Source: Paragordius varius (lineage: Eukaryota > Animalia > Nematomorpha). Taken from it: a DNA stretch of 64,000 nt. Position 1 is the stretch's first letter; each line of letters opens with the position of its first letter. The notes below the pieces were generated by a model that did not search any database, was not told the DNA's origin, and saw only the letters and a program-made list of their open reading frames with translations. The stretch spans positions 992,001 through 1,056,000 of the forward strand of contig OZ176060.1 of assembly GCA_964247055.1 (NCBI GenBank), read 5' to 3'. Positions 7,866 through 54,160 of the stretch are shown one piece after another. The position numbers and the translations under genes were made by a program.

Positions 7866-8846
7866 CGGTAAAAATTTAAATTCTACGGAAAAAACGTAAA
7901 AATATAAAAACAAATATTTTTGTCTAAAAGACAACCATACTTTTAAAATTTATATTTTTTTATATATATACCATTTACAGTTCAAATTCACCCTTGAACA
8001 ATTCAAATTCACCCTTAAACAATTAAAAATTACCCTAAAAAGAAATTATATTATTTAAAAACTAATATAACTTATTAATTTTATTTGAAATATATCTTTA
8101 TGGCATAGTTTATTATTTTTATTTAATACAAAATTTTTATTTATAAAAATATATATTAAAATATAGGTAATTTTTTATCTTTTGAAAAAACATATATTTT
8201 ATTTGAGGGTAAATTTGATTTGTTCAAGGGTGAATTTGAATTTTAATGGTATTTAAATCAAGTATATAGAAATTTTTATTTATAAAAATATATTAAAATA
8301 TAGGTAATTTTTTATCTTAAAAAACATATATTTTATTTAAGGATAAATTTGAATTGTTCAAGGGTGAATTTGAATTGTAATGGTATATAAATCAAATATA
8401 TAGAAATTTTTATTTTTAAAAATATATTAAAATATAGAATTTTTTATCTTAAAAAACATATATTTTATTTGAGGGTGAATTTGAATTGTTCAAGGGTGAA
8501 TTTGAATTTAAATGGTATATAAAATTTTTATTTAACACAAAATTTTTATTTTCTAAAATATATTAAAATATAGGTAATTTTTTATCTTAAAAAACATATA
8601 TTTTGTGAATTTGAATTGTTCAAGGGTGAATTTGAATTGTTTAAGGGTGAATTTGAATTTTCATATATATAACTCATTTTTTAAACTCTAAAGTATTATA
8701 TAGAAATTTTTATTGTTAAATCAATCAAATATGATTTTTACATTGTAATTAAATGTATTTTATAAAAGAAATAAAAAAGTATGGTTGTTTTTTGAAAAAA
8801 ATATTTTTATAAAAATTTTGTCCGTATAATTTCACAGTTTTCACTG
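7866..8846 (+). mobile_element. Element C copy 1 (non-autonomous foldback/MITE-like, TA-flanked)
   Basis: TA|CGGTAAAAA...GACAACCATACTTT...AAAGTATGGTTG...TTTTCACTG|TA; internal 21-bp AAGGGTGAATTTGAATTGTTC repeats in inverted arrangement. Confidence 0.8.
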
Positions 8847-11800
8847 TATTTGTTTTCTAAAACAAAACACTTTTTTTCTTGATAAATCTGTCTAGATAGA
8901 AATTTCAAATTATAAAACTCAAAAAAATAAGTAAAAGGAAACATCTAATTAAAATTTATAATAATCTAATTGAAATTTTTAAAAATATATTTTCTATAAT
9001 AAACACTTTTTTTCTTGATAATTCTGTTTAGCTGTAAAAGCTTCACAGCGAGTATGTACTTAATTACTCAAGTATTTTAAGACAAAAACTCGAAAAAAAT
9101 AAGTAAAAGGAAACAATCTAATTAAAATTGAAATAATAAAATTATTCTTTAAAACAACACACTTTTTTTTATAAATCTCTCTTTTACTTAAAAGCTTCTT
9201 AATATTACAGCGAGTATATACTTAATTACTTAAGTATTTTAAAAGGAAAAGATTTTTTCAACTTTAAATATTCATTTAGTTTCTTAATAGACTGAGGGCG
9301 AAAATTTTAAAATTTTAAATGAAAAACTCGAAAAAAATAAGTAAAAGGAAACAATCTAGAAATTGATATTCATAATAATAATAATATTATTCTCTAAAAT
9401 AAACACTTTTTTTCTTAAAAAATCTCTTTTACTTAAAAGTTTATCAATATTAAAGCGAGTATATACTTAATTACTCAAGATTTTAAAAGCAAACTTTTAT
9501 TCTAAAATATTCATATGGCTACCTTATTTGAGTGAGAACGAGAAATGTAAATTTCAAGTAAAAACTCGAAAATAAAAAAAAACATAAGGAAATAATCTAG
9601 AAATTAAAATTGATCATATTAATAATATTATTATTCGCTAAATAAACACTTTTTTCTTGATAAATCTCTTTTACTTAAAAGCTTCTTAATATTACAGCGA
9701 GTATATACTACATTACTCAAGTATTTTAAGACATAATTCGAAAAAAAGTATAAAAAGAAAGAATCTAATTAAAATTGATAATAATAATTATAATAATAAA
9801 ATCTATGTTTCAATAAGCATAAACACTTTTTTTTAATAAATCCCTTTTAGTAAAAGCTTAACATATTAAAGCGAGTATATACTACATTAATCAAGTATTT
9901 TTAAAGAAAAATTAATAAGGTTTTTTAAAATATTCATCTGGCTTATAATAAAATTTTAAAATCTCGAAACTTAATAAAAATAAAAGCAAATAATCTAGAA
10001 ATTTAATATGTAAATAATAATAATTTATTCTCTAAAACAAAACACTTTTTTCTTAAAAAACATTTTACTTAAAAGCTTCTTAATATTACAGCGAGTATAT
10101 ACTACATTACTCAAGTATTTTAAAAAAATAAGTAAAAGGAAACAATTTAGAAATTGAAATTGATAATAAATATAATATTATTCTTTAAAATAAAGACTTT
10201 TTTCTGGATAAATCTTTTTTTAGTTCTAAAAGCTTATTAATATTAAAGCGAGTATGTACTACATTACTCAAGTATTTTAAAAGCAAGGTTTTTTGAATTT
10301 AAAATATTCCTGTGGGTTTTCTTTGAAATTGAAATTTCAAGTAAAAACTCGAAAAAAATAAGTAAAAGGAAATAATTTAGAAATTAAAATTGATAATAAT
10401 AATAAAAATATTATTATTTCTAAAACAAAACACTTTTTTCTTGAAATATTTCTTTAGATAGAAATTTCAAATTATAAAACTCGAAAAAATTGAGTAAAAG
10501 GAAATAATCTAATTAAAATTTATAATAATCTATTGAAATTGTTAATAAATACTTTTTTCTTGATAAATCGCTTTTTCTCAAAAGCTTATCAATTTTACAG
10601 CGAGTATATACTTAATTAATCAAGTATTTTAAAAGCAAACTTTTATTCTAATAGAAATTCAAATAAAAAACTCGAAAACAAAAAGAAACAATCTAATTGA
10701 AATTGTTGATAAAAATAATATTATTCTCTATAATAAACACTTTTTTTCTTGATAAATCACTTTTTTTGCTCTAAAAGCGCATATATATTAATCGAGTATA
10801 TACTACATTACTCAAATATTTTAAAAGAGAAAAAGAAATATGTTTTTTAATCCTAAATATTCATCTGACTTTCTTTGCTTGATTTAAAGCGAGAAATAAA
10901 AATTTTAGATAAAAACTCGAAAAAAATAAGTAAAAGGTAACAATCTAGAAATTGAAATTTATAAAAATAATTTTATTATTCTCTAAAACAAGACACTCTT
11001 TTTTTATAAATTTTTTCTACTTAAAAGCTTCTTAATATTAAAACGAGTATTTACTACATTACTCAAGTATTTTAAAAACAAAGACTTTTTTCTAAATCTG
11101 GCTACCTTGCTCGAGTTAAAGCGAGAAATAAAAGTTTTAAATGAAAAACTCCAAAATAAAAAATAAGTAAAAGGAAATAATCTAGAAATTGAAATTGTTA
11201 ATTATAATAATAAAATCAATATTACAGCGAGTATATACTTAATTACTCAAGTAATTTATAAGCAAGGTTTTTTGTATAAATATTACTGTGGCTTTTTTCA
11301 GTGAGAACAAGAAATCAAAATTTCAAGTAAAAACTCGAAAAAAATAAGTAAAAGGAAACAATCTAATTAAAATTGATAATATTATTATTATTCACTAAAA
11401 TAAACACTTTTTTTCTAGATAAATCTTTTTTTGCCTCTAAAAGCTTCTTAATATTACAGCGAGTATATACTACATTACTCAAGTATTTTAATACAGAAAC
11501 TCGAAAAAATAAGTAAAATATATAATCTTAAAATTGAAATTGTTAATAATATTATTTATTCTCTAAAATCAAACACTTTTTTTGTTAAAAAATCTCTTTT
11601 ACTTAAAAGCTTAACAATATTAAAGCGAGTATATACTACATAACTCAAGTATTTTAAAAACAAAGACTTTTATTCTAATAGAATTTTAAATTATAATTCT
11701 TTTAAAAATTGAGTAAAAAAAAAATAATTAGAAAATGAAATTGTTAATAATAATAATAATATTATTTTCTAAAATAAAAACTTTTTTCTTGATAATTTTG

Positions 11801-14710
11801 TTAAACTGTAAAAGCTTATTAATATTACAGCGAGTATATACTACATTACTCAAGTATTTTAAGAGAAAAATTCGAAAAAAAAGGAAATAATCTAGAAAAT
11901 AAAATTGTTAATTATAATAATAATAATAATAATATTCTTTAAAATCTATGTTTCAGTGAGTATATTAATTAATCAAGTATTTTAAAAAAGGTTTTTTTTC
12001 AATTCTAAAATATTCCTGTGGGTTTCCTTTGAAATTAAAATTTCAAATAAAAACTCGAAAAAAATAAGTAAAAGGAAATAATCTGGAAATTATAATTGAA
12101 ATTAATAATAAAAATAATATTATTCTCTAAAACAAAACAATTTTTTCTTTATAAATTCTCTTTTAGTAAAAGCTTCTTAATATTATAGCGAGTATATACT
12201 TAATTACTCAATTATTTTAAAAGAAAGGTTTTATAAAATATTACTGTGGATTCCCTTTGAAATTTCAAATATAAATTCAAAAAAAGTAAAATGCAATAAT
12301 CTAGAAATTGAAATTGTTAATAAAAATATTATTCTCTAAAATAAAGACTTTTTTCTGGATAAATCTCTTTTACTTAAAAGCTTCTTAATATTACAGCGAG
12401 TATATACTACATTACTCAAGTATTTAAAGAGAAAGGAAAATTAAAACTAGAATATTACTGTGGATTTCCTTTGAAATTCCAAAAGAAATAATTTATAAAA
12501 TCGATTAAATAAAAAAAGGAAATAATCTAGACTTTAATATGTAAATTATAATAAAAATAATATTATTCTCTAAAGCTACGTATTTTTCTGGATAAATCTC
12601 TTTAGATAGAAATTTCAAATTATAAAACTCGAAAAAATTTAGTAAAAGGAAACAATTTAGAAATTGAAATTGTTAATAATAATATTATTCTCTAAAACAA
12701 AACACTTTTTTCTTGATAAATCTCGCTTTTACTTAAAAGCTTCTTGATATTACAGCGAGTATATACTACATTACTCGAGATTTTAATACAGAAACTCGAA
12801 AAAAATTAGTAAAAGGAATCAATCTAATTAAAATTTATAATAATCTAATTGAAATTGTTAATAAACACTTTTTTTTTTGATAAATTTTCTTTTACTTAAA
12901 AGCTTATCAATATTACAGCGAGTATATACTTAATTACTCAAGTATTTTAAGACAAAAATTCGAAAAAAAAATAGTAAAAGGAAAGAATCCAATTAAAATT
13001 GATAATAATAATAATAATAATAAAATCAAAATTACAGCGAGTATATACTTAATTAATCAAGTTTTTTTAAATAAAAGATAGTTTTTTGAATTTCAATATT
13101 CCTGTGGCTTACTTTATTCGAGTGAGAACGAGAATTAAAAATTTTAAATGAAAATTCGAAAAAAATAAGTAAAAGGAAACAATCTAGAAATTAAAATTGT
13201 TAAATATAAAAATAATATTATTATTTTTTAAAACAAAACACTTTTTTTCTTAATAAATCTCTTTTACTTAAAAGCTTCTTAATATTACAGCGAGTATATA
13301 CTACATTAGTCAAGTATTTTAAGGTAAAATCTCGAAAAAAATAAGTAAAAGGAAATAATCTAGAAATTGAAATTGTTAATTATAGAAATAATATTATTCT
13401 CTAAAACAAAACACTTTTTTTCTGGATAAATCTGTATTTTAATAGCTTTTCAACAGCGAGTATATACTACATTACTAAGTTTTTTTAAAAACGAGGTTTT
13501 TTAATTAAAATATTCTTGTGGATTTCCTTTAAAATTCCAAATAAAAATTTCAAATTATAATTCTAGAAAAAAAGAAGTAAAAGGAAATAATCTATTGAAA
13601 TTGATAATAAATATAATATTTTTTCTAAAATAAAGATTTTTCTTAATAAATCTCTATAGGATAGAAATTTCAATTCAAAAACTCGAAAAAAATATGTAAA
13701 AGGAAATAATCTAATTAAAATTTATAATAATATTATTCTCTAAAAAAAACTTGATAAATCGCTTTTACTTAAAAACTTTTTTATATTAAAGCGAGTATAT
13801 ACTACATTACTCAAGTATTTTAAGAGAGAAACTCGAAAAAATAAAAATAAGTAAAAGGAAACAATCTAGAAATTGAAATTTATAATAATAATAATTATAA
13901 TATGATTTTCTAAAACTAAACACTTTTTTTTAATAAATCCCTTTTACTTAAAAGCTTATTAATATTACAGCGAGTATATACTACATTACTCAAGTATTTT
14001 AAAAGCAAGTTTTTTAAATCTAATATATTACTTTGGATTTCCTTTAAAATTCGAAAATTCAAAAAAATAAAAAAATAAGTAAAAGGAATAATCTAGAAAT
14101 TAAAATTGATAATAATATAAATATTCTCTAAAACTAAACACATTTTTCTTTCTTGATAAATCTCTTTTACTTAAAAGGTTCTTAATATTACAGCGAGTAT
14201 ATACTACATTACTAAAATATTTTAAGAATAATGAATAAGGTTTTTTTAATCTAATACATTACTGTGGATTTTCTTTGAAATTTAAAAAAATACTCGAAAA
14301 AAAGAAGTAAAAGGAAATAATCTAGAAAATAAAATTGTTAATTATAATAATAATAATCTTTAAAACAAAACACTTTTTTTTCTTAATAAATCTCTTTAGT
14401 TAAAAATTTCAAATAAAATAAAAAAATAAAAAAAGGAAACAATCTAGAAATTGAAATTGATAATAAAAATAATATTATTCTTTAAAATAAAGACTTTTTT
14501 TCTTAATAAATCTCTTTTACTGTAAAAGCTTCTTAATATTACAGCGAGTATATACTTAATTAATCAAGTATTTTAAAGGCAAGTTTTCCTCAATTATTTC
14601 TGTGGCTTACTTGCTCGAGTGAGAACGAGAAATAATAATTTCAAGTAAAAACTCGAAAAAAATAAGTAAAAGGCAATAATCTAAAAATTGAAATTGTTGA
14701 TAATTCTATA

Positions 14711-15234
14711 CAGTGAAAATTTAAACTCTAAAGAAAAAACGTAAAAATATAAAGACAAATATTTTTATCTAAAAGACAACCATACTTTTAAAATTTATAT
14801 TTTTATATATATATACCATTTACAGTTATTCACCCTTGAATAATTCAAATTTACCCTTGAACAAATTAAAAATTCACCCTAAAAAGAAATTATGTGTTTT
14901 TATGGTATATAAATCAAGTATATAGAAATTTATATTTATAAAAATATATATTAAAATATAGGTAATTTTTTATCTTAAAAAACATATTTTATATATTTGA
15001 GGGTGAATTTGAATTGTTCAAGGGTGAATTTGAATTCTAATGGTATATAAAAATTTTTCAGTTACATTTTTATTTATAAAAATATAGAAATTTTTATTGT
15101 TAACTCAATCAAATATGATTTTTACCTTTGTAATTAAATGTTTTTAATATAAGAAATAAAAAAAGTATGGTTATTTTTTGAAAAAAAAAATATATTTTTA
15201 ACATTTTGTCCATATAAATTCACAGTTTTCACTG
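14711..15234 (+). mobile_element. Element C copy 2 (shortest, best-matched ends)
   Basis: TA|CAGTGAAAA ... TTTTCACTG|TA; one right-arm subunit. Confidence 0.85.
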
Positions 15235-16123
15235 TATTGATTCTAAAACTACACACTTTTTTTCTTGATAAATCTCTGTTAATAGAAATTTCAAGTAAAA
15301 ACTCGAAAAAATTGAGTAAAAGGAAACAATCTAATTAAAATTTATAATAATCTAATTGAAATTGTTAATAATTTTTCGTAATAAATCTTTTTTGGGCTCT
15401 AACAGCTTATCAATATTAAAGCGAGTATATACTTAATTACTCAAGTAAAAGTAAGGTTTTTTGAATATCAATTATTTCTGTGGCTACCTTGCTCGAGTTA
15501 GAACGAGAATTGAAAATTTTAAAATGAAAATCTCGAAAAAAATAAAAGGAAACAATCTAAATGAAATTGATAATAAAAATAATATTATTCTTTTAAATAA
15601 AGACTTTTATCTTAATAAATCTCTTTTTTAAGGCTTTCAATATTACAGCGAGTATATACTTAATTACTCAAGTTATTTTTAAAAAAAATAGATTTTTTTG
15701 AATCTCAATTATTCCTGTGGACCTTTGAAATTTCAAATAAAAACTTAAAAATTAATAAAAAAGTAAAAGGAAATAATCTAGAAATTGAAATTGTTAATTT
15801 TAATAAAAATATTATTCTCTAAAACAAAACACTTTTTTTCTTGATAAATTCCTTATTTACTTAAAAGCTTCTTAATATTACAGCGAGTATATACTACATT
15901 ACTCAAGTATTTTAAAAACAAAGACTTTTATTTTAATAGAAATTCAAAAAAATTTAAAAAAAGTAGTAAAAGGAAAAAATCTAATTATGATAATAAATAT
16001 AATATTATTCTTTAAATAAAGATTTTTTTTGATAAATCTTTAGAATTTCAAATAAAAACTCGAAAAAAATAAGTAAAAGGAAATAATCTAGAAATTGAAA
16101 TTGATAATAAAAATAATATTATA

Positions 16124-17063
16124 CGGTAAAAATTTAATATTTTAAGGAAAAAACGTAAAAATATAAAAACAATATTTTATGTAAAAGACAACCATACTTT
16201 TAAAATTTTTATTTTTATATATATATACCATTTACAGTTCAAATTCACCCTTGAACAATTCAAATTTAAAACAATTAAAATTTACCCTAAAAAGAAATTA
16301 TGTGTTTTAGAAACAAATATAACTTATTAATTATATTAAATAAATCTGTATGGCATAGTTTATTATTTTTTCAGTATTATTTTTATTTAAAACAAAATTT
16401 TTATTTTTTAAAAATATATTAAAATATAGGTAATTTTTTATCTTTTGAAAAAACATATATTTTATTTGAGGATGAATTTGAATTGTTTAAGGGTGAATTT
16501 GAATTTTAATGGTATATAAATCAAGTATATAAAAATTTTTATTTTTTAAAAATATATTTAAAATATAGGTAATTTTTTATCTTTTGAAAAAACATATATT
16601 TTATTTAAGGGTGAATTTGAATTGTTTAAGGGTGAATTTGAATTCTAATGGTATATAAATTAAGTATATTCAAAATTTTTATTTTATAAAAATATATTAA
16701 AATATATGTAATTTTTTTATCTTTTGAAATAAAAAATTTTATTTAAGGGTGAATTTGAATTATAATGGTATATAAATTATAGAGAAATTTTTATTTATAA
16801 AAATATATTAAAATATAGGTAATTTTTTATCTTTTGAAAAAACATATATTTTTATTTGAGGGTGAATTTGAATTGTTAAAGGGTGAATTTGAATTGTAAT
16901 GGTATATAAATCAAGTATATAGAAATTTTTATTTTCTAATATTAAAATAAGTATTTTACATTGTAATCAAATGTTTTTATAAAAGAAATAAAAAAAGTAT
17001 GGTTGTTTTTTGAAAAAAAATATATTTTTACATTTTATCCGTATAAATTCACAGTTTTCACTG
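16124..17063 (+). mobile_element. Element C copy 3
   Basis: TA|CGGTAAAAA ... TTTTCACTG|TA. Confidence 0.8.
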
Positions 17064-18269
17064 TATTGGTTTTCTAAAACAAAACACTTTTTTTCTTGAT
17101 AAATCTTTTTAAATAGTATTTCAAGTAAAAACTCGAAAAAATAAAGTAAAAGGAAACAATCTAGAAATCGAAATTGTTGATAATAAAAATAATATTATTC
17201 TCTAAAACAACATACTTTTTTTCTTAAATTTTCTTTTATTTAAAAGCTTAATATTGAAGCGAGTATATACTACATTACTCAAGTATTTAAAGAAATAGAA
17301 AGTAATAAAGGTGGATTTCCTTTAAAATTTCAAATGAAAACTTTTAAAATTAAAAAGTATAAGGAAATAATCTAGAAATCGAAATTGTAAATAATAATAA
17401 TAAATATAATATTATTCTCTAAAACAAGACACTTTTTCTTAATAAATCTCTTTTACTTAAAAGCTTCTTAATATTACAGCGAGTATAAACTTAATTATTC
17501 AAGTATTTTAAGACAAAAACTCGAAAAAAAATAAGTAAAAGGAAACAATCTAATTGAAATTAATAATAATAATAATAAAATCTATGTTTCAGCGAGTATA
17601 TACTTAATTTCTCAAGTATTTTAAAAGATAAAGAAAGAAATCGTTAATCTAAAATATTTCTGTGAATTCCCTTTGAAATTCCAAAAAAAACTTTTAAAAT
17701 TAAAAAAAAAATAATCTAAAAATCGAAATTGTCAATTATAATAATAATTAATTATTCTCTAAAACAACACACTTTTTTCTTGATAAATCGCTTTTTCTCA
17801 AAAGCTTATCAATATTACAGCGAGTATATACTTAATTACTCAAGATTTTAAAAGCAAGGTTTTTAAATTTCAACAAATAAAAATTTCAAATAAAAAACTC
17901 GTAAATTAAAAAAAAGTTAAAGGAAACAATATAGAAATTGAAATTGATAATAAAATAATAATATTATTCTTTAAATAAAGTTTTTTTTTATAAATTTTCT
18001 TTTACTTAAAAGCTTCTTAATATTAAAGCGAGTATATACTTAATTACTCAAGTATTTTAAAACAAAAATTTGAAAAAATTAAGTAAAAAGAAATAATTTA
18101 ATTAAGATTGATAATAATAATATTATTCTTTAAATTAAGAACCTTTTTTTATAAATCTCTATAGATAGAAATTTTAAATGAAAAAACTCGAAAAAATAAG
18201 TAAAAGGAAATAATCTAAAAATTGAAATTGATGATAATATATTATTATTTATAATAAATACTTTTTTTT

Positions 18270-19234
18270 AATAAATCTCTTTTACTTAAAAGCTTCTTAA
18301 TATTACAGCGAGTATATACTACATTACTCAAGTATTTTAAGAGAAATAGATTTTTATTATAAAAGAAATTCAAAAAAACTCGAAAAAATAAGTAAAAGGA
18401 ATAATCTAAAAATAATTGATAATAAATAAAATTATTATTATCTATAAATAAAGACTTTTTTTCTTAATAAATCTCTGTAGATAGAAATTTTAAATAAAAA
18501 CTTGAATAAATAAGTAAAAGGAAATAATCTAGAAATCGAAATTGTTGATAAATATAATATTATTCTTTAAATAAAGGTTTTTTCTTAATATATATCTGTA
18601 GATAGAAATTTATTATAATTCTTGAAAAATTGAGTAAAAAGAAAAAATCTAAAAATAAAAATTGTTGATTATACTATACAGTAAAAATATTATTATTATC
18701 TATAATAAACACTTTTTTCTTAATAAATCTCTTTTACTTAAAAGCTTTTTAATATTACAGCGAGTATATACTACATTACTCAAGTATTTTAAGAGAAATA
18801 GATTTTTATTATAAAAGAAATTCAAAAAAACTCGAAAAAATAAGTAAAAGGAATAATCTAAAAATAATTGATAATAAATAAAATTATTATTATCTATAAA
18901 TAAAGACTTTTTTTCTTAATAAATCTCTGTAGATAGAAATTTTAAATAAAAACTTGAATAAATAAGTAAAAGGAAATAATCTAGAAATCGAAATTGTTGA
19001 TAAATATAATATTATTCTTTAAATAAAGGTTTTTTCTTAATATATATCTGAAGATAGAAATTTATTATAATTCTTGAAAAATTGAGTAAAAAGAAAAAAT
19101 CTAAAAATAAAAATTGTTGATTATACTATACAGTAAAAATATTATTATTATCTATAATAAACACTTTTTTCTTAATAAATCTCTTTTACTTAAAAGCTTT
19201 TTAATATTACAGCGAGTATATACTACATTACTCA
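18270..19234. repeat. Near-identical 452-bp tandem duplication inside satellite B
   Basis: GAGAAATAGATTTTTATTATAAAAG occurs at 18341 and 18793, and TACAGTA at 18677 and 19129. Only one substitution was seen by eye inside the unit (CTGTAG vs CTGAAG). Confidence 0.9.
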
Positions 19235-19424
19235 ATTTTTTAAAAGACAAAAATTCGAAAAAAAGTAGTAAAAGGAAATAATCTAAAAATTGAATTGATA
19301 ATAAAAAATAATATTATTCTCTAAAACAAAACACTTTTTTTCTTAGAAAATCTCTTTTACTCAAAAGATTGTTAATCTTAAAGCGAGTATATACTTTTTA
19401 TAAATATTTTAAAAGCAAGGTTTT

Positions 19425-33930: not shown

Positions 33931-34208
33931 AAACAATTTAATTCACCCTAGAACAATTCACATTCACCTGAGAACAATTCTTCACCCTCGAACAATACAA
34001 AAATACCCTAAAAGAAATTGTTTTTTTAGATTAAAAAAATACTTATATTTTTTTATATTTTAAAAAACAAAAATACCTGTAAAATATATATAATACTGAA
34101 AAAATAATAAACTATGCCATAAGAATATATATTTTATTAATGATGAGTTATATTAACCCCAAAACACATAATTTATTTTTAGGGTGAATTTGAATTGTAA
34201 ATGGTATA
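33931..34208 (-). mobile_element. Element C, inverted core-only derivative
   Basis: The central segment AATAATAAACTATGCCATAA is the reverse complement of the usual TTATGGCATAGTTTATTATT. It is flanked by 21-bp repeats and lacks the CAGT/ACTG outer ends. Confidence 0.7.
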
Positions 34209-35161
34209 TTTTAAGAGAAAGAGGTTTTTAAATCTAAAATATTCCTGTGGATTTCCTCTGAAATTTTAAAAACTTAAAAAAAGTAAAAGAAAATAATCTA
34301 GAAATTTAATATATAAATTTATTAATAATAATATTATTTGTTCTCTGAAACAACTTTTTTTAATAAATCTCTTTTACTTTCAAATGAAAACTCGAAAAAA
34401 ATAAGTAAAAGGAAATAATCTATAAATTGAAATTGATAATAAAAATAATATTATTCTCTAAATCAAAACACTTTTTTTGTTTATAAATCTCTTTATATAG
34501 AATTAAATTATAAAACTCGAAAAATAGTACAAGGAAATAATCTAATTAAAATTATAATAATCTCATTGAAATTGTTAATAAACACTTTTTTCTTAATAAA
34601 TTTCTTTTACTTAAAAACTAAACAATTTTAAAGCGAGTATTTATTACATTAATCAAGTATTTTAAAAAAAAACTTTTATTCTAAAAAAATTCAAATTGAA
34701 AAACTCGAAAAAAATAAGTAAAAGAAAACAATCTTAAAATTAAAATTCATAATAAAAATAATATTATTCTTTAAATAAAGTTTTTTTTTATAAATCTCTT
34801 TTACTTAAAAGCTTCTTAATATTACAGCGAGTATATACTACATTACTCAAGTATTTTAAAAGCAAGGTTTTTTATTCTAATACATTACTGTGGTTTTTTT
34901 ACTTGAGTTAAAGCGATATAAAAATTTCAAATTATAAAACTCGAAAAAAATAAGTAAAAGGAAATAATCTAATTGAAAACGTTAATTATAATATTATTAT
35001 TCTATAAAATTAGACATTTTCTTGATAAATTGCTTTTTCTTAAAAGCTTCTTAATATTACAGCGAGTATATATTACATTATTCAAATATTTTAATACAAA
35101 AACTCGAAAAAATAAGTAAAAGGAAACAATCTAGAAATTAAAATTGTTAATTAATACTATA

Positions 35162-35731
35162 CAGTAAAAATTTAAATTTTACGGAAAAAACATAAAAATA
35201 CAAAAACAAATATTTTAATATAAAAGACAACCATACTTTTAAAATTTATATTTTCATATATATATACCATTTACAGTTCAAATTCACCCTTGAACAATTC
35301 AAATTCACCCTCAAACAATTAAAATTTAGCCTAAAAAAAAATTATGTGTTTTAGAAACAAATATAAATTATTAATTTTATATGAAATATATCTTTATGGC
35401 GCATAGTTTATTATTTTTATTTAAAACAAAATTTTTATTTTTTATAAAAATATATATTAAAATATAGGTAATTTTTTATCTTAAAAAACATATATTTTAT
35501 TTGAGGGTAAATTTGAATTGTTCAAGGGTGATTTTGAATTGTAATGGTATATAACTAATTGTTTTAAACTCTAAAGTATTATATAGAAATTTTTAAATAT
35601 AAATCAATCAAATATGATTTTTACCTTTGTAATCAAATGTTTTTTATAAAAGAAATAAAAAAAGTATGGTTGTTTTTTGAAATAAAAATATATTTTTACA
35701 TTTTGTCCGTATAAATTCACAGTTTTCACTG
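35162..35731 (+). mobile_element. Element C copy 6
   Basis: TA|CAGTAAAAA ... TTTTCACTG|TA. Confidence 0.82.
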
Positions 35732-36296
35732 TATATGTTTTCTAAAACTAAAGACTTATTTTCTTGATAAATCTCTTTAGATAGAAATTTCAAATTATAA
35801 AAGTTCGAAAAAATTAAGTAAAAGGAAATAATCTAATTAAAATTTATAATAATCTATTTGAAATTGTTAATATTTTTCTTGATAATTGTGTTTAACTGTA
35901 AAAGCTTCTTAATATTAAAGCGAGTATATACTTAATTACTCAAGTATTTTAAAACAAAGACTTTTATTCTAATAGAATTTTAAATTATAATTCTTTTAAA
36001 AATTAAGTAAAAAAAAATAATTTAGAAAATAAAATTGATATAAATATAATATTATTCTTTAAAACAAAACACTTTTTTTCTTGATAAATCTCTTTTACTT
36101 AAAAGCTTCTTAATATTACAGCGAGTATATACTTAATTACTCGAGATTTTAAAAGAAAAAGGTTTTTTAATCTAAAATATTGCGGTGGCTTCCTTGCTCG
36201 AGTTAGAACAAGAAATAGAAATTTCGAGTAAAAACTTGAAAAAAATAAGTAAAAGGTAACAATCTAGAAATTGAAACTGTTATTAATAATAATATA

Positions 36297-37538
36297 CAGT
36301 AAAAATTTAAAATTCTACGGAAAAAAACATAAAAATATAAAAACAAATATTTTTGTTCAAAAGACAACCATACTTTTAAAGTTTTTATATTTTTATATAT
36401 ATATACCATTTACAGTTCAAATTCACCCTTGAACAATTCAAATTCACCCTAAAAGAAATTAAAATTTACCCTAAAAAGAAATTATGTGTTTTAGAAAACA
36501 AATATAACTGATAAATTTTATATGAAATATATCTGTATGGCATAGTTTTTAATTTTTATTTAATACAAAATTTTTATTTTTCAAAAATATATTAAAATAG
36601 AGGTAATTTTTTATCTTAAAAAACATTTATTTTATTTGAGGGTGAATTTGAATTGTTTAAGGGTGAATTTGAATTGTATATAAAATTTTATTTAAAACAA
36701 AATTTTTATTTTTTAAAAATATATTAAAATATAGGTAATTTTTTATCTTTTGAAAAACATATATTTTATTTTAGGGTGAATTTGAATTGTTCAAGGGTGA
36801 ATTTGAATTGCAATGGTATATATAAATCAAGTATATAGAAATTTTTATTTATAAAAATATATTAAAATATAGGTAATTTTTTATATTTGGAAAAAACATA
36901 TATTTTATTTTAGGATGAATTTGAATTGTTTAAGGGTGAATTTGAATTGTAATGGTATATAAATCAAGTATTATATAAAAATTTTTATTTAAAAAATTTA
37001 TTATAGGTAATTTTTTATCTTAAAAAACATATATTTTATTAAAGGGTGAATTTGAATTGTTTAAGAAATTTTAATTGTTTAAGAATGAATTTGAATTGTA
37101 ATGGTATATAAAAAATTTTCAGTTAGATTTATATTTATAAAAATATATTAAAATATAGGTATTTTTTTATCTTTTGAAAAAACATATATTTTATTTGAGG
37201 GTGAATTTGAATTGTAATGGTATATAAATCAAGTAATATATAGAAATTTTTATTTATAAAAATATATTTAAATATAGGTAATTTTTTATCTTAAAAAACA
37301 TATATTTTATTTGAGGGTGAATTTGAATTGTTTAAGGGTGAATTTGAATAGTTCAAGGGTGAATTTGAATTGTGGTATATAAATTAAGTATATAGAAATT
37401 TTTATTGGTAAATCAATCAAATAAGTATTACATTGTAATCAAATATTTTTTATAAAAGAAATAAAAAAAGTATGGTTGTTTTTTGAAAAAAAAATAAATT
37501 TTTTACATTTTGTCCGTATAAATTCACAGTTTATACTG
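36297..37538 (+). mobile_element. Element C copy 7
   Basis: TA|CAGTAAAAA ... TTTATACTG|TA. Confidence 0.82.
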
Positions 37539-38657
37539 TATTGGTTTTAAAACAAAACACTTTTTTTCTTGTTAAATCTCTATAGATAGAAATTTCAAAT
37601 TATAAAACTCGAAAAAATATGTAAAAAACAATCTAACTGAAATTGATAATAAAAATAATATTATTCTCTAACACAACACCCTTTTTATTATAAATTTTTT
37701 TACTTAAAAGCTTTTTAATATTACAGCGAGTATTTACTACATTACACAAGTTATTTTTTAAAAAAAGACTTTTATTTTAAAAGAATTTCAAAAAAATAAA
37801 AAAATAAGTAAAAGGAAATAATCTAGAAATTGAAATTGTTTATTATAATAATAATAATATTATTATTCTTTAAAATAAACACTTTTTTCTTTATAAAATT
37901 CTCTTTTTAAGGTTTTCTTATTTGCAGCGAGTATATACTTAATTACTCAAGTATTTAAAAAGCAAGGTTTTTTTCAATTCTAAAATATTCATCTGGCTAC
38001 CTTGCTCGAGTGAGAACAAGAAATAAAAATTTCAAGTAAAAACTCGAAAAAAATAAGTAAAAGGAAACAATCTAATTAAAATTGATATGGAAATTTTAAT
38101 AAAAATATTATTCTTTAAAACAAAACACTTTTTTTCTTAATAAATCTCTTTTACTTAAAAGCTTCTAAATATTACAGCGAGTATATACTACATTACTCAA
38201 GTTTTTTAAGACAGAAATTCGAAAAAAATAAGTAAAAGGAAATAATATAGAAATTGAAATTGTTAATAATAATAATAATAATAAAATCTATGTTTCAGCG
38301 AGTATATTACATAAGTATTTTAAAAAAGACTTTTATTCTAAAATATTCATCTGGCTGCCTTCTTTTAGTGAGAACAGAAATAAAAATTTCAAGTAAAAAC
38401 TCAAAAAAATAAGGAAAAGGAAACAATTTAGAAATTGAAATGATAATATAAATAATATTATAAAGACTTTATTCTTAATAAATCTCTTTTACTTAAAAGC
38501 TTCTTAATATTACAGCGAGTATATACTACATTACTCAAGTATTTTTTAAAAACAAAGACTTTTATTCTAATAACAATTTCAAATTATAAAACTCGAATAA
38601 AAAAAATAAGTAAAAGGAAAGAATTTAATTAAAACTAAAATTGAATTTGATAATATA

Positions 38658-40059
38658 CAGTAAAAATTTAAATTCTACGGAAAAAACATAAAAATATAAA
38701 AACAAATATTTTATCTAAAAGACAACCATACTTTTAAAATTTATATTTTTATACATATATACCATTTACAGTTATTCACCCTTGAACAATTTAAATTCAC
38801 CCTTAAACAATTAAAATTTACTCTAAAAAAGAAATTATGTGTTTTAGAAACAAATATAACTTATTAATTTTATATGAAATATATCTGTATGGCATAGTTT
38901 ATTATTTTTATTTAAAACAAAATTTTTATTTATAAAAATATATTAAAATATAGGTAATTTTTAATATTTTGAAAAAACATATATTTTATTTGAAGGTGAT
39001 TTTGAATTGTTCAAGGGTGAATTTGAATTGTAATGGTATATAAATCAAGTATATAGAAATTTTTATTTTTATAAAAATATATTAAAATATAGGTAATTTT
39101 TATTTTTCTAAAAATATATTTTAAAATATAGGATCTTAAAAAAATATATTTTATTTAAAGGTAAATTTGAATTGTTTAAGTGTGAATTTGAATTGTTTAA
39201 TGGTAAATTTAAATTCTAATGGTATATAAAATTTTTATTTAAAACAAAATTTTTTTTTTTAAAAATATATTAAAATATAGGTAATTTTTTATCTTTTGAA
39301 AAAACATATATTTTATTTGAGGGTGAATTTGAATTGTTTAAGGGTGAATAAAAAATTTTCAGTTACATATTTATTTTTATAAAAATATATTAAAATATAG
39401 GTAATTTTTTATAAAAAACATATATTTTATTCAAAGGTGAATTTGAATTGTTTAAGGGTGAATTTGAATTGTAATGGTATATAAAACAAGTATTATATAG
39501 AAATTTTTATTTTATTTTTTAAAAATATATTAAAATATAGGTAATTTTTTATCTTTTGAAAAAACATATATTTTATATTTGAGGGTGAATTTGAATTGTT
39601 CAAGGGTGAATTTGAATTGTAATGATATAAATTAAGTATATAGAAATTTTTATTTATAAAAATATATTAAAATATAGGTAATTTTTTTATTTTAAAAAAC
39701 ATATTTTTTATATTTGAGGGTGAATTTGAATTGTTCAAGGGTGAATTTGAATTGTAATGGTATATAAAAAATTTTTCAGTTACATTTTTATTTTCTAAAA
39801 TATATTAAAATGTAATTTTTTATTAAAAACATATATTTTATATTTGAGGGTAAATTTTAATTGTTTAAGGGGGTGAATTTGAATTCTAATGGTATATAAA
39901 TTAAGTATTATATAAAAATTTTTATTGTTAACTCAATCATATATGTATTTTACATTGTAATCAAATGTTTTTTATAGGAAAAATTAAAAAAGTATGGTTG
40001 TCTTTTGTAAAAAAAATATATTTTTACATTTTGTCCGTATAAATTTACAGTTTTCACTA
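38658..40059 (+). mobile_element. Element C copy 8
   Basis: TA|CAGTAAAAA ... TTTTCACTA|TA (terminal G mutated). Confidence 0.8.
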
Positions 40060-43000
40060 TATTGGTTCTAAAACAAAACACTTTTTTTCTTGATAAATCT
40101 CTATAGGATAGAAATTTCAAATTATAAAACTCGAAAATTAAATAAGTAAAAGGAAATAATCTAATTGAAATTGTTAATAAAAATTATATTACTATTTTCT
40201 AAAACAAAACACTTTTTTTATTTATAAATTTTTTTTTACTTAAAAGCTTCTTAATATTACAGCGAGTATATACTACATTACTCAAGTATTTTAAAAACAA
40301 AGACTTTTTTTCTAATAGAATTTCAAATAAAAAACTCGAAAAATATAAGTTAAAGGAAACAATCTATAATTGAAATTGATATAATTCTCTAAAACAAGAT
40401 ACTTTTTTTCTTGATAAATCTCTTTTACTTAAAAGCTTCATAATATTAAAGCGAGTATATACTACATTACTCAAGTATTTTAAAAGCAAGGTTTTATAAA
40501 TTTAAAATATTACTGTGGATTTCCTTTGAAATTCCAAAAGAAATCTTTTTAAATCAAAATGTAAAGAAATTTAGAAATTTAATATGTAAATTTTAATAAT
40601 AATCTAATTGAAATGGTTAATAACACTTTTTTCTTGATAATTCTCTTTTACTTAAAAGCTTCTTAATATTACAGCGAGTATATACTACATTACTCAAGTA
40701 TTTTAGACAAAATTCGAAAAAAATATGTAAAAGGAAATAATCTAATTGAAATTGATAATAATAATAATAAAATCAATATTAAAGCGAGTATAAACTACAT
40801 TAATCAAGTTTTTTAAGCAAGAAAGAAAAATATTTTTTAATCTAAATATTCCTGTGGCTTACTTGTTCGAGTGAGAACGAGAAATAAAAATTTCAAGTAA
40901 AACTCGAAAAAAAATAAAAGGATATAATCTAGAAATTGAAATTGTTGATAAAAAAATATAATTCTCTATAATAAAAAATTTTTTTTTTGATAAATCTCTT
41001 TAAATAGAAATATCAAGTATAAAAACTCGAAAAAATTGAGTAAAAGGAAACATCTAATTAAAATTTATAATAAAAATAATATTATTATTCTTTAAATAAC
41101 TACATACTTTTTTGATAAATCTCTATATTTCAAATTCCAAATGGAAAACTCGAAAAAAATAAGTAAAAGGAAATAATCTAGAAATTGAAATGATAATATA
41201 AATAATATTATTATTCTCTAAAACAAAACACATTTTTTCTTAATAAATCCCTTTTACAAAAGCTTCTTAATATTACAGCGAGTATATACTACATTACTCA
41301 AGTATTTTAAGTAAAAACTCGCAAAAATTAAGTAAAAGGAAATAATCTAGAAATTTAATTTAATTATAAATATAATATTATTCTCTAAAATAAACACTTT
41401 TTTTTGATAAATCTTTGTAAATAGAAATTTCAAATTAAAAAGTCGATAATAAAAAAATAAGTAAAAGGAAATAATCTAGAAATTAAAATTGATAATAAAA
41501 ATAATATTCTCTAAAATAAAACTTTTTTTTTATAAATTTCTTTTTTAAAAGCTTCTTAATTTCGAGTATATACTTCATTACTCAAGTATTTTAAAAACAA
41601 ACTTTTATTCTAATAGAAATTCATATTAAAAACTCGAAAAAAATAAGTAAAAGGAAATAATCTAGAAATTGAAATTGTTAATTATAAAAATAATATTATT
41701 CTCTAAAACAAAACACTTTTTTTCTTGATAAATTATCTTTACTTAAAAGCTTAACAATATTACAGCGAGTATATACTACATTACTCAAGTATTTTAGACA
41801 AAAACTCGAAAATAAAAAAAGTAAAAGGAAACAATCTAGAAATTGAAATTGATAATAAATATAATATTATTCTTTAAAATAAAGACTTTTTTCTTGATAA
41901 ATCTCTATAGATAGATAGTTCAAATAAAAACTCGAAAATAAACAAAGAAGTTAAAGGAAACATCTAATTAAAATTTTAAATAATCTAATTGAAATTGTTA
42001 ATAAAAACTTTTTTCTTAATAAATCTCTTTTAGTAAAAGCTTATTTATATTACAACGAGTATATACTTAATTACTCAAGTATTTTAAGAAAAAGAAAGAA
42101 ACAAAAGTATTAAAAGGAATAATCTAATTAAAATTGATAATAATTATAATAAAATCTATATTACAGCGAGTATTTACTCAAGTATTTTAAGGGAGAAAAA
42201 ACATATTTATTCTAAAATATTCCTGTGGATTTCCTTTAAATTTTAAATGAAAAACTCGAAAAAAATAAGTAAAAGGAAACAATATAGAAATTAAAATTGT
42301 TAATTATAATAATAATATTATTATCTCTGAAACAAGATACTTTTTTTCTGGATAAATCTCTGTAGATAGAAATTTCAAATTTTATAATTCTTGAAAAAAT
42401 TGAGTAAAAGGAAACAATCTAATTGAAAAATCTAATTGAAATTGTTAATAAACACTTTTTTTCTTGATAAATTTTTTTTGCCTCTAAAAGCTTATTAATA
42501 TTACAGCGAGTATATACTACATTACTCAAGTTTTTTAAGAGAAATAATGAATAAGGTTTTTTAATTTAAAATATTATTGTGGATTCCCTTTGAAATAGTA
42601 ATTTCAAGTAAAAACTTGTAAAAAATAAGTAAAAGGAAATAATCTAGAAATTAAAATTGATAATAAATATAATATTAATCTCTAAAACAAACACTTCTTT
42701 TCTTAATAAATCTCTTTTACTTAAAAGCTTCTTAATATTACAGCGAGTATTTACTACATTACTCAAGTATTTTAAAAGCAAAAACTTTTATTCCAAAATA
42801 TTCCTGTGAATTCTTTTTAAATTTCAAAAATTATAAAACTCGAAAAAATTGAGTAAAAGGAAACAATCTAGAAATTGAAATATTTAATAATAAAAATAAT
42901 ATTATTTTTTAAAACAACAGACTTTTTTGTTGATAAATCTGTCTAGAGCGAATATAATAAAATTATAAAACTCGAAATTAAAAAATTAAATGAAACAATC

Positions 43001-44037
43001 TAAAAATTGAAATTGATAATAATAAAAATAATATTATTATTCTCTAAAATAAATACTTTTTTGTTGATAAATTTCTTTTACTTAAAAGCTTTTATATATT
43101 ACAGCGAGAATTTACTACATTACTCAAGTATTTTAAGAACAAAGACTTTTATTCTAATAAAAATTTCAAATAAAAACTCGAAAAAAATAAGTAAAAGAAA
43201 ATAATCTAGAAATTGAAATTGATAATAATAATATAATATTATTCTCTAAATCAAAACACTTTTTTTGTTTATAAATCTTTTTTTACTTAAAAGCTTCTTA
43301 ATATTACAGCGAGTATATACTTAATTACTCAAGTATTTTAATACAGAAACTCGAAAAAAATTGAGTAAAAGGAAACAATCTAATTAAAATTAATAATAAT
43401 AATATAATATTATTCTCTAAAACAAAACACTTTTTTCTTGATATATCTCTTTTAGTTAAAAGCTTAATATTACAGCGAGTATATACTTAATTACTCAAGT
43501 ATTTTAAAAGCAAGGTTGTTTGAATCTAAAATATCCTGTGGCTTCTTTGCTTAAGTAAATTGAAAAATGAAAATTTTAATTAAAAACTCGAAAATAAGTA
43601 AAAGGCATAATCTAATCAAATTTAATTAAAATTGATAATAATAATATTATTCTTTAAAATAAACACTTTTTTCTTAATAAATATCTTTTACTTAAAAGCT
43701 TAACAATATTAAAGCGAGTATCTACTACATTACTCAAGATTTTAAAAGCATGGTTTTTTGAATATTAATTATTCCTGTGGCAACCTTGCTCGAGTTAAAG
43801 CGAGAAATAAAAATTTCAAGTAAAAACTCGAAAATAATAAGTAAAAGGAAACAATATTAAAATTGATAATAAAATAATATAATTCTCTAAAACAAAACGC
43901 TTTTTTTGGATAAATCTCTTTTAGTAAAAGCTTGTTAATATTACAGCGAGTATATACTTAATTACTTAAGATTTTAAAACAAAAAAAAGAAGTTAAAGGA
44001 AAAATCTAGAAATTGAAATTGATAATTATAATAATAT

Positions 44038-44038
44038 A

Positions 44039-44074
<36 letters not shown>

Positions 44075-44115
44075 TAAAAATAATAATAATAATAATGATA
44101 ATAATAATAATAATA
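44038..44115. repeat. (AAT)n microsatellite expanded inside a B monomer
   Basis: ATAATAATAATAAT... run of ~75 bp. Shorter runs occur at the same monomer position at ~6995-7020 and ~48708-48733. Confidence 0.9.
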
Positions 44116-45155
44116 AAATCTATGTTTCAGTGAGTATATACTACATTACTCTAGTATTTTAAAAGCAAGGTTTTTTTATCCTAAATATTCACTAAAATAA
44201 AGATTTTTTTAAATAAATCTTTTTTGATAGAAATTTCAAATGAAAAACTCGAAAAAATTGAAAAGGAACCTAGAAATAAAAATTGAAATTCATAAAAATA
44301 ATAATATAAATGTTTGAAATAAACACTTTTTTGTTATTAAATATCTTTAACTTAAAAGCTTTACAATATTACAGCGAGTATATATTATATTACTCAAGTA
44401 TTTTAGAACAAAAACTTTTATTCTAATAGAAATTTCAAAAAAACTCGAAAAAAATAAGTAAATATAATAGAAATTAAAATTGATAATAAAAATAATATTA
44501 TTCTCTGAAACAAAATACTTTTTTCTTAATAAATCTCTTTTAGTAAAAGCTTCTTAATATTACAGCGAGTATTTACTTAATTACGCAAGTATTTTAAGAC
44601 AAAAACTCGAAAAAATTGAGTAAAAGGAAACAATCTTAGAAATTGAAATTCATAATAAATATAATATTATTATTTAAATAAAGACTTTTTTTCTTTATAA
44701 ATCTCTTTTAGTTAAAAGCTTAACAATATTAAAGCGAGTATATACTACATTACTCAAGTATTTTAAGACAAAGATTCGAAATAAAGTAATAAAAGGAAGG
44801 AATCTAATTAAAATTGATAATAATAATAATTATAAAATCAATGTTTTAGTCAGTATATTAATTAAAATATTTTAAAAACAAAGACTTTTATTCTAATAGA
44901 AATTTCAAATTATAATTCTTGAAAAAATTTAGTAAAAGGAAACTATTTAATTTAAATTGCTAATAATATTATTATTCTCTAAATAAATTTTTTTTAATAA
45001 ATTTTCTATTAAAAGCTTCTTAATATTACAGCGATTATATACTTAATTACTCAAGTATTTTAAGAAAAAAAACTTTTAAATAGAAATTCAAATAAAAAAC
45101 TCGAAAAAAATAAGTAAAAGGAAATAATCTAGAAATTGAAATTGTTGATAATATA

Positions 45156-46864
45156 CGGTAAAATTTATATTCTACCGAAAAAAACGTAAAAATATAAAAA
45201 CAAATATTTTATCTAAAAGACAACCATACTTTTAAAATTTATATTTTTATAAATATATACCATTTACAGTTCAAATTTACCCTTAAACAATTCAAATTCA
45301 TCCTCAAATAAAATATATGTTTTTTAAGATAAAAAATTACCAATATAAAATATATTTTTATAAATAAAAATTTCTATATACTTGATTTATATACCATTAT
45401 AATTCAAATTCATCTAAAATAAAATATATGTTTTTTTCAAAATATAAAATACCTATATTTTAATATATTTTTAAAAAAATAAAAATGTAACTGAAAAAAT
45501 TTATATACCATTACAATTCAAATTCACCCTTAAATAATTCAAATTTACCCTTGAACAATTTAAATTCACAAAATATATGTTTTTTAAGATAAAAAATTAC
45601 CTATATTTTAATATATTTTAGAAAAATAAAAATTTTGTTTTAAATTAAAAAATTTATACCATTACAATTCAAATTCACCCTTGAACAATTCAAATTAATT
45701 CTTAAACAATTAAAATTTACCCTAAAAAAAGAAATTATGCGTTTTAGAAACAAATATAACTTATTAATTTTATATGAAATATATCTTTATGGCGCATAGT
45801 TTATTATTTTTATTTAAAACAAAATTTTTATTTTTTAAAAATATATTAAAATAAAGGTAATTTTTAATCTTAAACGAAATTTTAAAAATATATATGAATA
45901 TATTAATAATTTTTAATTTCAAACAAAATTTTATTTTTTAAAATATATATTAAATAGTAGGTAATTTTTTATTTTAAACGAAATTTTATGTTTAGAAATA
46001 TATTAAATATAGGTAATTTTAATATACCATTTACAGTTCAAATTCACCCTTGAACAATTCAAATTCTGACCTTAAACAATTAAAATTTACCCTAAAAAGA
46101 AATTTTGTGTTTTAGAAACAAATATAACTTATTAATTTTATATGAAATATATCTGTATGGCGCATAGTTTATTATTTTTATTTAAAATATAAATTTTTAT
46201 TTTTATAAAAATATATTAAAATAAAGGTAATTTTTAATCTTAAACGAAATTTTAAAAATATATATGAATATATTGGTAATTTTTAATTTCAAACAAAATT
46301 TTATTTTTTAAAATATATATTAAATATAGGTAATTTTTAATCTTTTGAAAAAACATATATTTTATTTGAGGGTGAATTTGAATTATTCAAGAGTGAATTT
46401 AAATTGTAATGGTATATAAATCAAGTATTATATAGAAATTTTTATTTTCTAAAATATATTTAAATATAGGTAATTTTTTATCTTTTGAAAAAACATATAT
46501 TTTATTTGAGGATAAATTTGAATGTTTAAGGGTAAATTTGAATTGTAATGGTATATAAATCAAGTATATATAGAAATTTTTATTTTTTAAAAAATATATT
46601 AAAATATAGGTAATTTTTTATCTTTTAAAAAAACATATATTTTATTTGGGGGTGAATTTGAATTGTTCAAGGGTGAATTTGAATTTTCATATATATAACT
46701 CATTGTTAAAAACTACAAAGTATTGTAAGAAATTTTTATTGGTAAATCAATCAATATTTTTTTTAATAAAATGTTTTTATAAAAGAAATAAAAAAAAGTA
46801 TGGTTGTCTTTTGAAAAAAAAAAAATTTTTACATTTTGTCCGTATAAATTCACAGTTTTCACAG
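45156..46864 (+). mobile_element. Element C copy 9 (internally rearranged, longest)
   Basis: TA|CGGTAAAA ... TTTTCACAG|TA. It has inverted ~130-bp subunits at ~45300-45700 and a duplicated central segment (~45720-46020 and ~46080-46330). Confidence 0.8.
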
Positions 46865-47474
46865 TATTTGTTTTAAAACAAAACACTTTTTTTTTCTTGA
46901 TAAATCTCTATAGGATAGAAATTTCAAATTATAAAACTCGAAAAAAATAAGTAAAAGGAAATAATCTAGAAATTGAAATTATTATTAAAAATAATATTAT
47001 TTATTCTCTGAAATAAAAACTTTTTTTAATAAATCTCTTTAGATAGAAATTTTAAATCAAAAACTCGAAAAAATAAGTAAAAGGAAACATCTAATTAAAA
47101 TTGATAATTATAAAATAATATTATTCTTTAAATAAACTTTTATCTTAATAAGTTTCTTTTACTTAAAAGCTTCTGTATATTACAGCGAGTATAAACTTAA
47201 TCAAATATTTTAAAAACAACTTTTATTCTAATAGAAATTTCGAATTATAAAACTCGAAAAAATTGAGTAAAAGGATATAATCTAGAAATTTAATTTGATA
47301 ATAAATATAATATTATTCTCTAAATCAAAACACTTTTTTTCTTAATAAATATCTTTAACTTAAAAGCTTAATAATAAAGCGAGTATATACTTAATTATTC
47401 CTGTATTTCAAGTAAAAACTCGAAAAAAAGTAAAAGGAAATAATCTAGATATCGAAATTGTTGATAATACTATA

Positions 47475-48432
47475 CAGTAAAAATTTAAATTCTACAGAAA
47501 AAAAACGTAAAAATATAAAAACAAATATATTTTTATCTAAAAGACAACCATACTTTAAAAATTTATATTTTTATATATATATATACCATTTACAGTTATT
47601 GACCCTTGAACAATTCAAATTTACCCTAAAAAGAAATTAAAAATTAACCCTAAAAAGAAATTATGTGTTTTAGAAACAAATATACTTATTAATTTTATAT
47701 GAAATATATCTGTATGGCGCATAGTTTATTATTTTTATTTAATCCAAAATTTTTATTTAATACAAATTTTTATTTTATAAAAATATATTAAAATATAGGT
47801 AATTTTTTATCTTTTGAAAAAACATATATTTTATTTGAGGGTGAATTTGAATTGTTTAAGGGTGAATTTGAATTGTAATGGTATATAAATCAAGTATATA
47901 GAAATTTTTATTTTTTATAAAAATTTATTAAATATAGGTAATTTTTTATCTTAAAAAACATATGTTTTATTTGAGGGTGAATTTGAATTGTTTAAGGGTA
48001 AATTTTCAGTTATATTTTTATTTTTTAAAAATATATTAAAATATAGGTAATTTTTTATCTTTTGAAAAAAAATATATTTTATTTGAGGGTGAATTTGAAT
48101 TTTTCAAGGGTAAATTTGAATTGTAATGGTATATAAATCAAGTATTATATAGAAATTTTTATCTATAAAAATATATATTAAAATTTAGGTAATTTTTTAT
48201 CTTAAAAAACATAAATTTTATTTGAGGGTGAATTTGAATTGTTCAAGGGTGAATTTGAATTGTAATGGTATATAAATCAATTATATAGAAATTTTTATTG
48301 GTAAATCAATCAAATATGATTTTTACCTTTGTAATTTAATGTTTTTTATAAAAGAAATAAAAAAAGTATGGTTGTCTTTTGAAAAAAAATATATTTTTAC
48401 ATTTTGTCCGTATAAATTCACAGTTTTCACTG
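47475..48432 (+). mobile_element. Element C copy 10
   Basis: TA|CAGTAAAAA ... TTTTCACTG|TA. Confidence 0.82.
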
Positions 48433-54146: not shown

Positions 54147-54160
54147 ACTAACAATAAAAA

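Follow-up and report, generated by a model that had tools for sequence, protein, structure and literature searches.

Foldback transposons such as FB and Galileo of Drosophila have a short centre between long inverted arms that consist of tandem sub-repeats, and their length is very variable. R1/R2 and Pokey in ribosomal DNA (rDNA) and Dada in small-RNA genes are site-specific elements that insert repeatedly and are found as young copies. In C. elegans, CeleTc1/Tc7 are Stowaway-like MITEs (miniature inverted-repeat transposable elements) of the Tc1/mariner type with long terminal inverted repeats (TIRs) (PMC3814204), and in Drosophila virilis the 220-bp repeats inside the TIRs of the foldback transposon Tetris have seeded satellite arrays (PMC4079207). 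The interplay between transposons and satellite DNA has been well reviewed (PMC9659126). In this report, a TA-flanked foldback element of the nematomorph Paragordius varius is discussed that lies at one fixed position of the monomer of a satellite, satellite B. The stretch that was analysed, referred to as the window, is 64,000 nucleotides long (C11:992001-1056000, in an assembly of 110.6 Mb and 44 contigs). An earlier, sequence-only reading of this stretch had offered two explanations for the element's position: one insertion was carried along by amplification of the satellite, or the element targets this site. We consider the first of these to be probable, with a single insertion carried by duplication of the satellite.

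The window contains ten full copies of the element (528-1713 bp), each at the same TA of the satellite B monomer and in the same orientation. The ten copies at one fixed position had been described before, and all ten could be bounded exactly. Each copy starts with TA followed by C(A/G)GT(A/G)AAAA and stops with TTTTCACTG followed by TA; copies 7, 8 and 9 have single-base variants of these ends. The end 11-mer TTTTCACTGTA occurs 21 times when one mismatch is allowed, against 3.2 occurrences expected. The left flank reads ...GAAATTG(T)TGATAAT(AC)TA and the right flank TT(T/G)G(T)TT(T)CTAAAACAAAACAC, and matching flanks stand at every copy, in agreement with the earlier description of them. Across C11:862-1056 kb there are 26 complete and four partial copies, two of the latter consisting of a left end only (878842, 962729) and two of a right end only (891526, 942039). 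Four further copies lie at C10:3.268-3.281 Mb, where they are inverted along with the satellite, and the array total is ~34 copies on C11 and C10, the shortest of 283 bp. All 30 of the 30 complete copies, on two contigs, occupy the same site in the same orientation relative to the monomer; if orientation were random, the chance of such uniformity would be ~2^-29.

The satellite B array that hosts the copies in the window (3455..50400, + strand) has monomers of ~120-245 bp with all anchors on the + strand. The GC content across the repeat region is 15-19%, in an AT-rich animal genome, and a second satellite (satellite A, with units of ~102-104 bp) breaks into satellite B at ~19.4-23.6 kb (~19400-23600). 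A signature 21-mer of satellite B has 246 matches genome-wide; among the matches listed all are on C10 or C11 and none is on C1-C9, and 47 of the 47 reverse-strand matches were placed on C10. Satellite B, which totals ~110 kb, is a local repeat seen at just two old inverted duplicate loci. The C10 and C11 loci have the same order of unique flank, adjacent foldback remnant, satellite B array and 52-bp satellite, and their unique flanks are colinear at 70-83% identity. The C10 locus is a duplicate of the C11 locus, old and in inverted orientation.

The monomers that carry the element are all of the short class, with a net host length (element subtracted) of 115-136 bp where it was measurable, and of 124-141 bp in a measurement of the copies in the window. 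About 37 short-class monomers are empty, and none of the ~270 longer monomers is filled. With the element removed, the mean distance is 0.130 between filled monomers, 0.205 between filled and empty monomers, and 0.173 between empty monomers. Of 5000 sets of 27 monomers drawn at random, not one was as homogeneous as the filled set, and the filled/empty label changes 8 times on the monomer tree compared with 25-27 times in the shuffles printed. The host monomers are a tight subfamily of their own. Additionally, no empty monomer with the filled-type junction GTTGATAAT.CTA-TA-TT(G/T)GTT was found. The host variant is fully occupied, every member being filled and none having a clean excision, and the other monomers that carry a TA-TTTGTT site are empty.

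Outside the arrays the lineage of the element is nearly absent. When up to 2 mismatches are allowed, the array right end is found on C10 and C11 only, save for 6 matches at about the control level. The array left end has a C at position 20, where nearly all of the dispersed copies listed have an A. The best relatives outside the arrays have 77-79% identity at the right end and 83-89% at the left end, compared with 81-100% within the arrays. Diversity is 0.10 in the element ends and 0.13-0.17 in the host flanks; these values are close, which indicates that the element and its host are of about the same age. Family size also bears on the number of insertions, since ~1,400 family elements in 110 Mb predict about one chance insertion in ~110 kb of satellite B. 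Colinear alignments span both junctions of element pairs, and the two-element block c22-c23 aligns with c14-c15 over 1743 bp at 83%. It is because of the uniform orientation, the single monomer subfamily, the array-confined lineage, the equal age of element and flank, and the restriction of satellite B to two duplicated loci that a single insertion is favoured, which was the first of the two explanations in the sequence-only reading.

We now examine what kind of element was inserted. Its features support its assignment to the DNA transposons of the Tc1/mariner type, as a non-autonomous foldback element that is MITE-like and has long TIRs. The resemblance to the long-TIR, Stowaway-like Tc1/mariner MITEs follows from the TA flanks, the CAGT ends, the lack of coding sequence, the long inverted arms and the high copy number. 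The left end is CAGTAAAAATTTAAATTCTACGG and the right end, reverse-complemented, is CAGTGAAAACTGTGAATTTATACGG, which are CAGT-like TIRs. In the left arm, ~110 nt of unique sequence with GACAACCATAC and TATACCATTTACA is followed by one to three 21-bp repeats (CAATTCAAATTCACCCTTGAA). The centre, between the two arms, is short, AT-rich and non-coding. The right arm consists of one to ~6 tandem units of ~135 bp, each of which holds two inverted 21-bp repeats and TGTAATGGTATA, and the right terminus is ~130 nt of unique sequence with GTATGGTTGTC. The modules paired between the arms are the termini, GACAACCATAC with GTATGGTTGTC, TATACCATTTACA with TGTAATGGTATA, and the 21-bp repeats. The number of ~135-bp right-arm units sets the length range of 528-1713 bp, with left-arm units also contributing in copy 9. 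When the shortest copy in the window (528 bp) was folded, the energy was -80.9 kcal/mol versus -46.6 +/- 4.1 in shuffles (z = -8.4); this value and the paired modules bear out the long imperfect inverted arms that had been noticed earlier. Long inverted arms, internal tandem sub-repeats and a short non-coding centre place the element in the foldback class. No open reading frame (ORF) of at least 86 aa overlaps the element region, and an Rfam search of that region gave no match.

The two arms are not identical. Over the terminal 85 nt the left and right arms are ~84% alike with four indels, and the asymmetry is common to all copies, as had been stated before. A chimeric origin of the two arms was considered and has no strong support; the ~84% likeness of the arms resembles the 83-89% identity of the left end to its dispersed relatives. 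The last 36 nt of each copy (e.g. window 48399-48434), ACATTTTGTCCGTATAAATTCACAGTTTTCACTGTA, are near-invariant in 30 copies. The diversity (pi) is 0.056 in these final 36 nt and 0.13 elsewhere in the right end, and the left end has no comparable conservation. Biased conversion was considered as the cause of the conserved motifs containing G and C, and was rejected, since the variability of G/C columns is about twice that of A/T columns.

The element belongs to a dispersed family. A search for the 25-nt left end with up to 3 mismatches gave 1390 + 1395 (~2,785) matches genome-wide, whereas the reversed control gave 1 + 0. In its dispersed copies this left end mainly has the forms TACAGTAAAAATT(T/G)AAATTATACGG; the terminus is found on all large contigs, and in nearly all of the dispersed termini listed a TA precedes CAGT. 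A left-end query composed of 70 nt of satellite flank and 110 nt of element had 9 dispersed matches, on C1, C3, C4, C8 and C9, of which eight begin at query position 70-71 and one at 63, position 71 being the T of the TA before CAGT. Empty satellite monomers cease to match this query at 45-80, mostly at 63-71. With the mirror query for the right end, eight dispersed relatives end at 128-139, where the element's last base is 130, and empty monomers pick up again at 132. Relatives are present on C1-C10 with homology that begins and ends at the element boundaries. The Tc1/mariner-type, TA-flanked nature of the element, proposed earlier, is borne out by the ~2,785 termini and by the TA/CAGT boundaries of the dispersed relatives; the family copies sought outside satellite B are there on other contigs, and nearly all of those listed have kept the TA.

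A TA stands at the left of 29 of the 30 complete copies and at the right of 28 of the 30, and the junction of paralogous empty monomers holds just one TA. The TA is read as a target-site duplication on the strength of these paralogues and of the family-wide TA, and it is formally possible that TA is part of the element's own end. The empty site pointed out in the sequence-only reading, AATAA-TA-TTTGTTCTCTAAAAC at 4113..4135 (+), is indeed an unoccupied TA site, but it lies in a long-class paralogous monomer and is not an allele of the filled one. Better empty look-alikes exist, e.g. ...AATAT-TA-TTTGTTCTC.

In 234 kb of sequence examined for family members outside the arrays, none with intact ends was found. 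Two ~300-bp dispersed elements with like ends were seen at C4:405123-405424 and C7:9406887-9407192, one with two left-type ends and the other with two right-type ends. Otherwise, left-end relatives and right-end relatives are at different dispersed loci. The array element may combine two sub-lineages, judging from where the relatives of its ends lie.

The genome also has at least 135 matches to DDE_3 (Tc1/IS630), many with intact ORFs of ~341 aa. Contig C1 has 19 DDE_3 matches, and no family terminus (up to 2 mismatches) lies within 5 kb of any of them. Some DDE_3 matches form inverted pairs 1.2-3 kb apart, e.g. C2:4376215(-)/4377838(+) and C9:1406528(-)/1408151(+).

A comparison of element and flank trees had been proposed as a way to tell carriage from targeting. 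The distances were compared, and the comparison had no power to decide either way because the copies carry no long-range phylogenetic signal. The distance matrices of the element and the flanks gave Mantel r values of -0.22 to +0.11, none significant, and the left and right ends of the element gave r = -0.10. Informative sites show detectable linkage only when they lie in one segment; across segments it is at the null level. Variation is shuffled over ~100-200 bp, and short conversion tracts together with unequal exchange within the 135-bp units are the likely causes.

Several observations weigh against a single insertion that was carried along. In the comparison of the termini near DDE_3 on C1, no transposase-bearing element with matching ends was found. 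No filled monomer has an exact empty allele, and the TA duplication is inferred from the paralogues and the family. The spacing of the copies is irregular (1.1-24 kb) with no fixed higher-order period, and the colinear blocks are partial. The earlier phrase "higher-order amplification" thus holds as far as passive amplification is concerned, but not for a fixed-period higher-order repeat, which is excluded by the irregular spacing; the amplification looks like unequal exchange and block duplication. The element ends are ~1.5x less diverse than the host flanks (p = 0.009), which could mean that the element spread somewhat later than the host variant; the lower diversity is accounted for equally well if the flanks were converted by empty monomers, which outnumber the filled ones roughly tenfold. 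Finally, copies on C10 and C11 are 87-93% alike, the same as within C11, though the unique flanks are at 70-83%. Since the likeness of the copies exceeds that of the flanks, some exchange between the two loci, or a later spread, is needed. Exchange between the C10 and C11 loci is suggested, and it is also hinted at by the identities of the 52-bp satellite. At both loci satellite B is adjoined by this ~52-bp-period satellite, which lies at C11:944355-957797 (outside the window) and at C10:3288041-3295000. Its identity is 91-92% within loci and equally between loci, compared with 70-83% for the unique flanks, and these values suggest concerted evolution of the satellite between the two loci.

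Three other explanations were weighed against a single insertion. The one that survives best, and which we nevertheless consider unlikely, is that related elements inserted independently, two to four times, at or near the TA and were then homogenised by conversion and amplified with the satellite. The left ends TACAGT and TACGGT and the right flanks TTGG, TTTG and TTGA could be the traces of such insertions, the left-end, right-end and flank variants are unlinked to each other, and the relatives of the two ends are at different dispersed loci. However, all copies share the left/right asymmetry, the indels between the arms and the array-confined right end. The variants are single-base changes as expected from decay, with G/C columns twice as variable.

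The second explanation, which is decidedly improbable, is homing, in which the element or its transposase recognises the satellite B site and many independent insertions took place. The use of the same TA in ~34 monomers is what homing would produce, and the slightly lower diversity of the element ends than of the flanks is compatible with it, as is the finding that copies are no less similar between the two old duplicate loci than within a single locus. These points are outweighed by others. The orientation is uniform in 30 of 30 copies although the TA target is symmetric; a single monomer subfamily is occupied, and fully, with other TA-TTTGTT monomers left empty; and the lineage has no off-target copies. 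The ~10% divergence between copies indicates that there was no recent burst, and about one chance insertion in ~110 kb of satellite B is expected from ~1,400 family elements in 110 Mb. No sign was found of repeated, independent insertions at one target, as made by a site-specific transposon, and the targeting that the sequence-only reading had kept as its alternative is disfavoured by the uniform orientation, the single occupied subfamily and the lack of off-target copies. In its most specific form, a Tc1/mariner-type MITE that homes in one orientation to the single TA of one satellite B variant, the idea is a shade more improbable still. If homing were true, the 36-nt right end (pi 0.056) would owe its conservation to continued recognition by a transposase, and breaks at this end could help drive the turnover of the array.

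The third explanation, that the sequence is no transposon and originated within the satellite itself as a palindromic sub-repeat, would fit the lack of coding capacity and the inner part that is itself tandem in ~135-bp units, but it is highly improbable given that the same terminus occurs thousands of times on all large contigs, that the homology of dispersed relatives is bounded by TA/CAGT and not within satellite sequence, and that foldbacks of the 21-bp repeat are dispersed genome-wide.

For the single insertion, the following history is proposed. One copy of the element, mobilised by a Tc1/IS630-type transposase, would have inserted at the TA of a short-class satellite B monomer. The filled monomer would then have been multiplied passively by unequal exchange, block duplication and short-tract conversion. 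The old inverted duplication of the whole locus would have added the C10 copies, leading to the ~34 on C11 and C10. The same processes would have altered the number of ~135-bp right-arm units and uncoupled the left end from the right. At present the copies seem inert and would no longer be mobile.

The ten copies in the window are all on the + strand. Copy 1 (7864..8848) is 985 bp from TA to TA and has the left end TACGGT and ~3-4 right-arm units. Copy 2 (14709..15236) is the shortest in the window at 528 bp, with one right-arm unit and the ends TACAGTGAAAA...TTTTCACTGTA. Copies 3 (16122..17065) and 4 (27731..28423) are 944 bp and 693 bp long. Copy 5 (29845..31202, 1358 bp) has ~6 right-arm units of ~135 bp, and copy 6 (35160..35733) is 574 bp. 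The right-end variants are TTTATACTGTA in copy 7 (36295..37540, 1246 bp) and TTTTCACTATA in copy 8 (38656..40061, 1406 bp). Copy 9 (45154..46866), the longest at 1713 bp, has the left end TACGGTAAAA, additional left-arm units and a 370-bp internal duplication. Copy 10 (47473..48434, 962 bp) served as the query of the genome searches.

Two solo left ends were also found, both on the + strand. The first, TACAGTAAAAA (11 nt, 18677..18687), has a left flank of the filled-monomer type joined to an empty-type monomer. The second (11 nt, 19129..19139) was made by a 452-bp tandem duplication at window 18236-19247, whose copies have 98% identity and each hold one 11-nt solo left end. The solo left end is, to judge from these junctions, a deletion derivative that was duplicated afterwards, and this copying of a remnant also speaks for passive spread.

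The right edge of satellite B is marked by a related foldback remnant (50490..51540, no strand assigned) with the same kind of 21-bp repeats as the element and no recognisable CAGT ends. It is made almost entirely of 21-bp repeats (~15 in the left arm and ~10 inverted ones in the right arm). A paralogue of the remnant is at C10:3263200-3263753, and arrays of its 21-bp repeat are dispersed through the genome, with ~1,500 first-look candidates, some as inverted pairs. The inverted segmental duplication pairs C10:3255001-3264505 with window 50501-58452 and takes in the gene-bearing flank beside the array. At C11:890900-891410, outside the window, GC-richer non-satellite sequence stands in place of the left part of one copy, and the right end alone remains beside it at C11:891526-891656. 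This GC-richer sequence is probably a later insertion or rearrangement in the array.

The locus is a clean, datable case of a DNA transposon frozen in a satellite and copied passively, which is clear but ordinary, and it does not point to a new mechanism. The element serves as a built-in marker of how the array grew, recording irregular block duplication, unequal exchange within its own repeats, short conversion tracts and one duplication of the locus. The finding also helps to define a very abundant foldback family of the Tc1/mariner type (~2,785 ends), which is useful for repeat annotation.

We return to the known systems. Like CeleTc1/Tc7, the element is non-coding, has a TA duplication and the CAGT... 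ends of the Tc1/mariner lineage, has arms longer than those of typical autonomous elements, and belongs to a family of thousands of copies. Unlike in CeleTc1/Tc7, its arms are modular, with 21-bp subterminal repeats and an amplifiable ~135-bp unit, and are only ~84% alike, and the present lineage survives only inside a satellite. FB and Galileo share the sub-repeated inverted arms; they have longer target duplications and belong to other superfamilies, with which the 2-bp TA and the CAGT ends of the present element do not agree. R1/R2, Pokey and Dada also have many copies at one exact position of a tandem unit, but in the present case a single old insertion that was copied passively is indicated. 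The element resembles Tetris in being a non-autonomous foldback with tandem repeats inside its arms, in the variable number of these internal repeats and in its interplay with satellite DNA. The comparison with Tetris is one of structure; the present element has TA/CAGT ends of the Tc1/mariner type, and the direction is reversed: in Tetris the repeats become a satellite, whereas here a pre-existing satellite carries the whole element.

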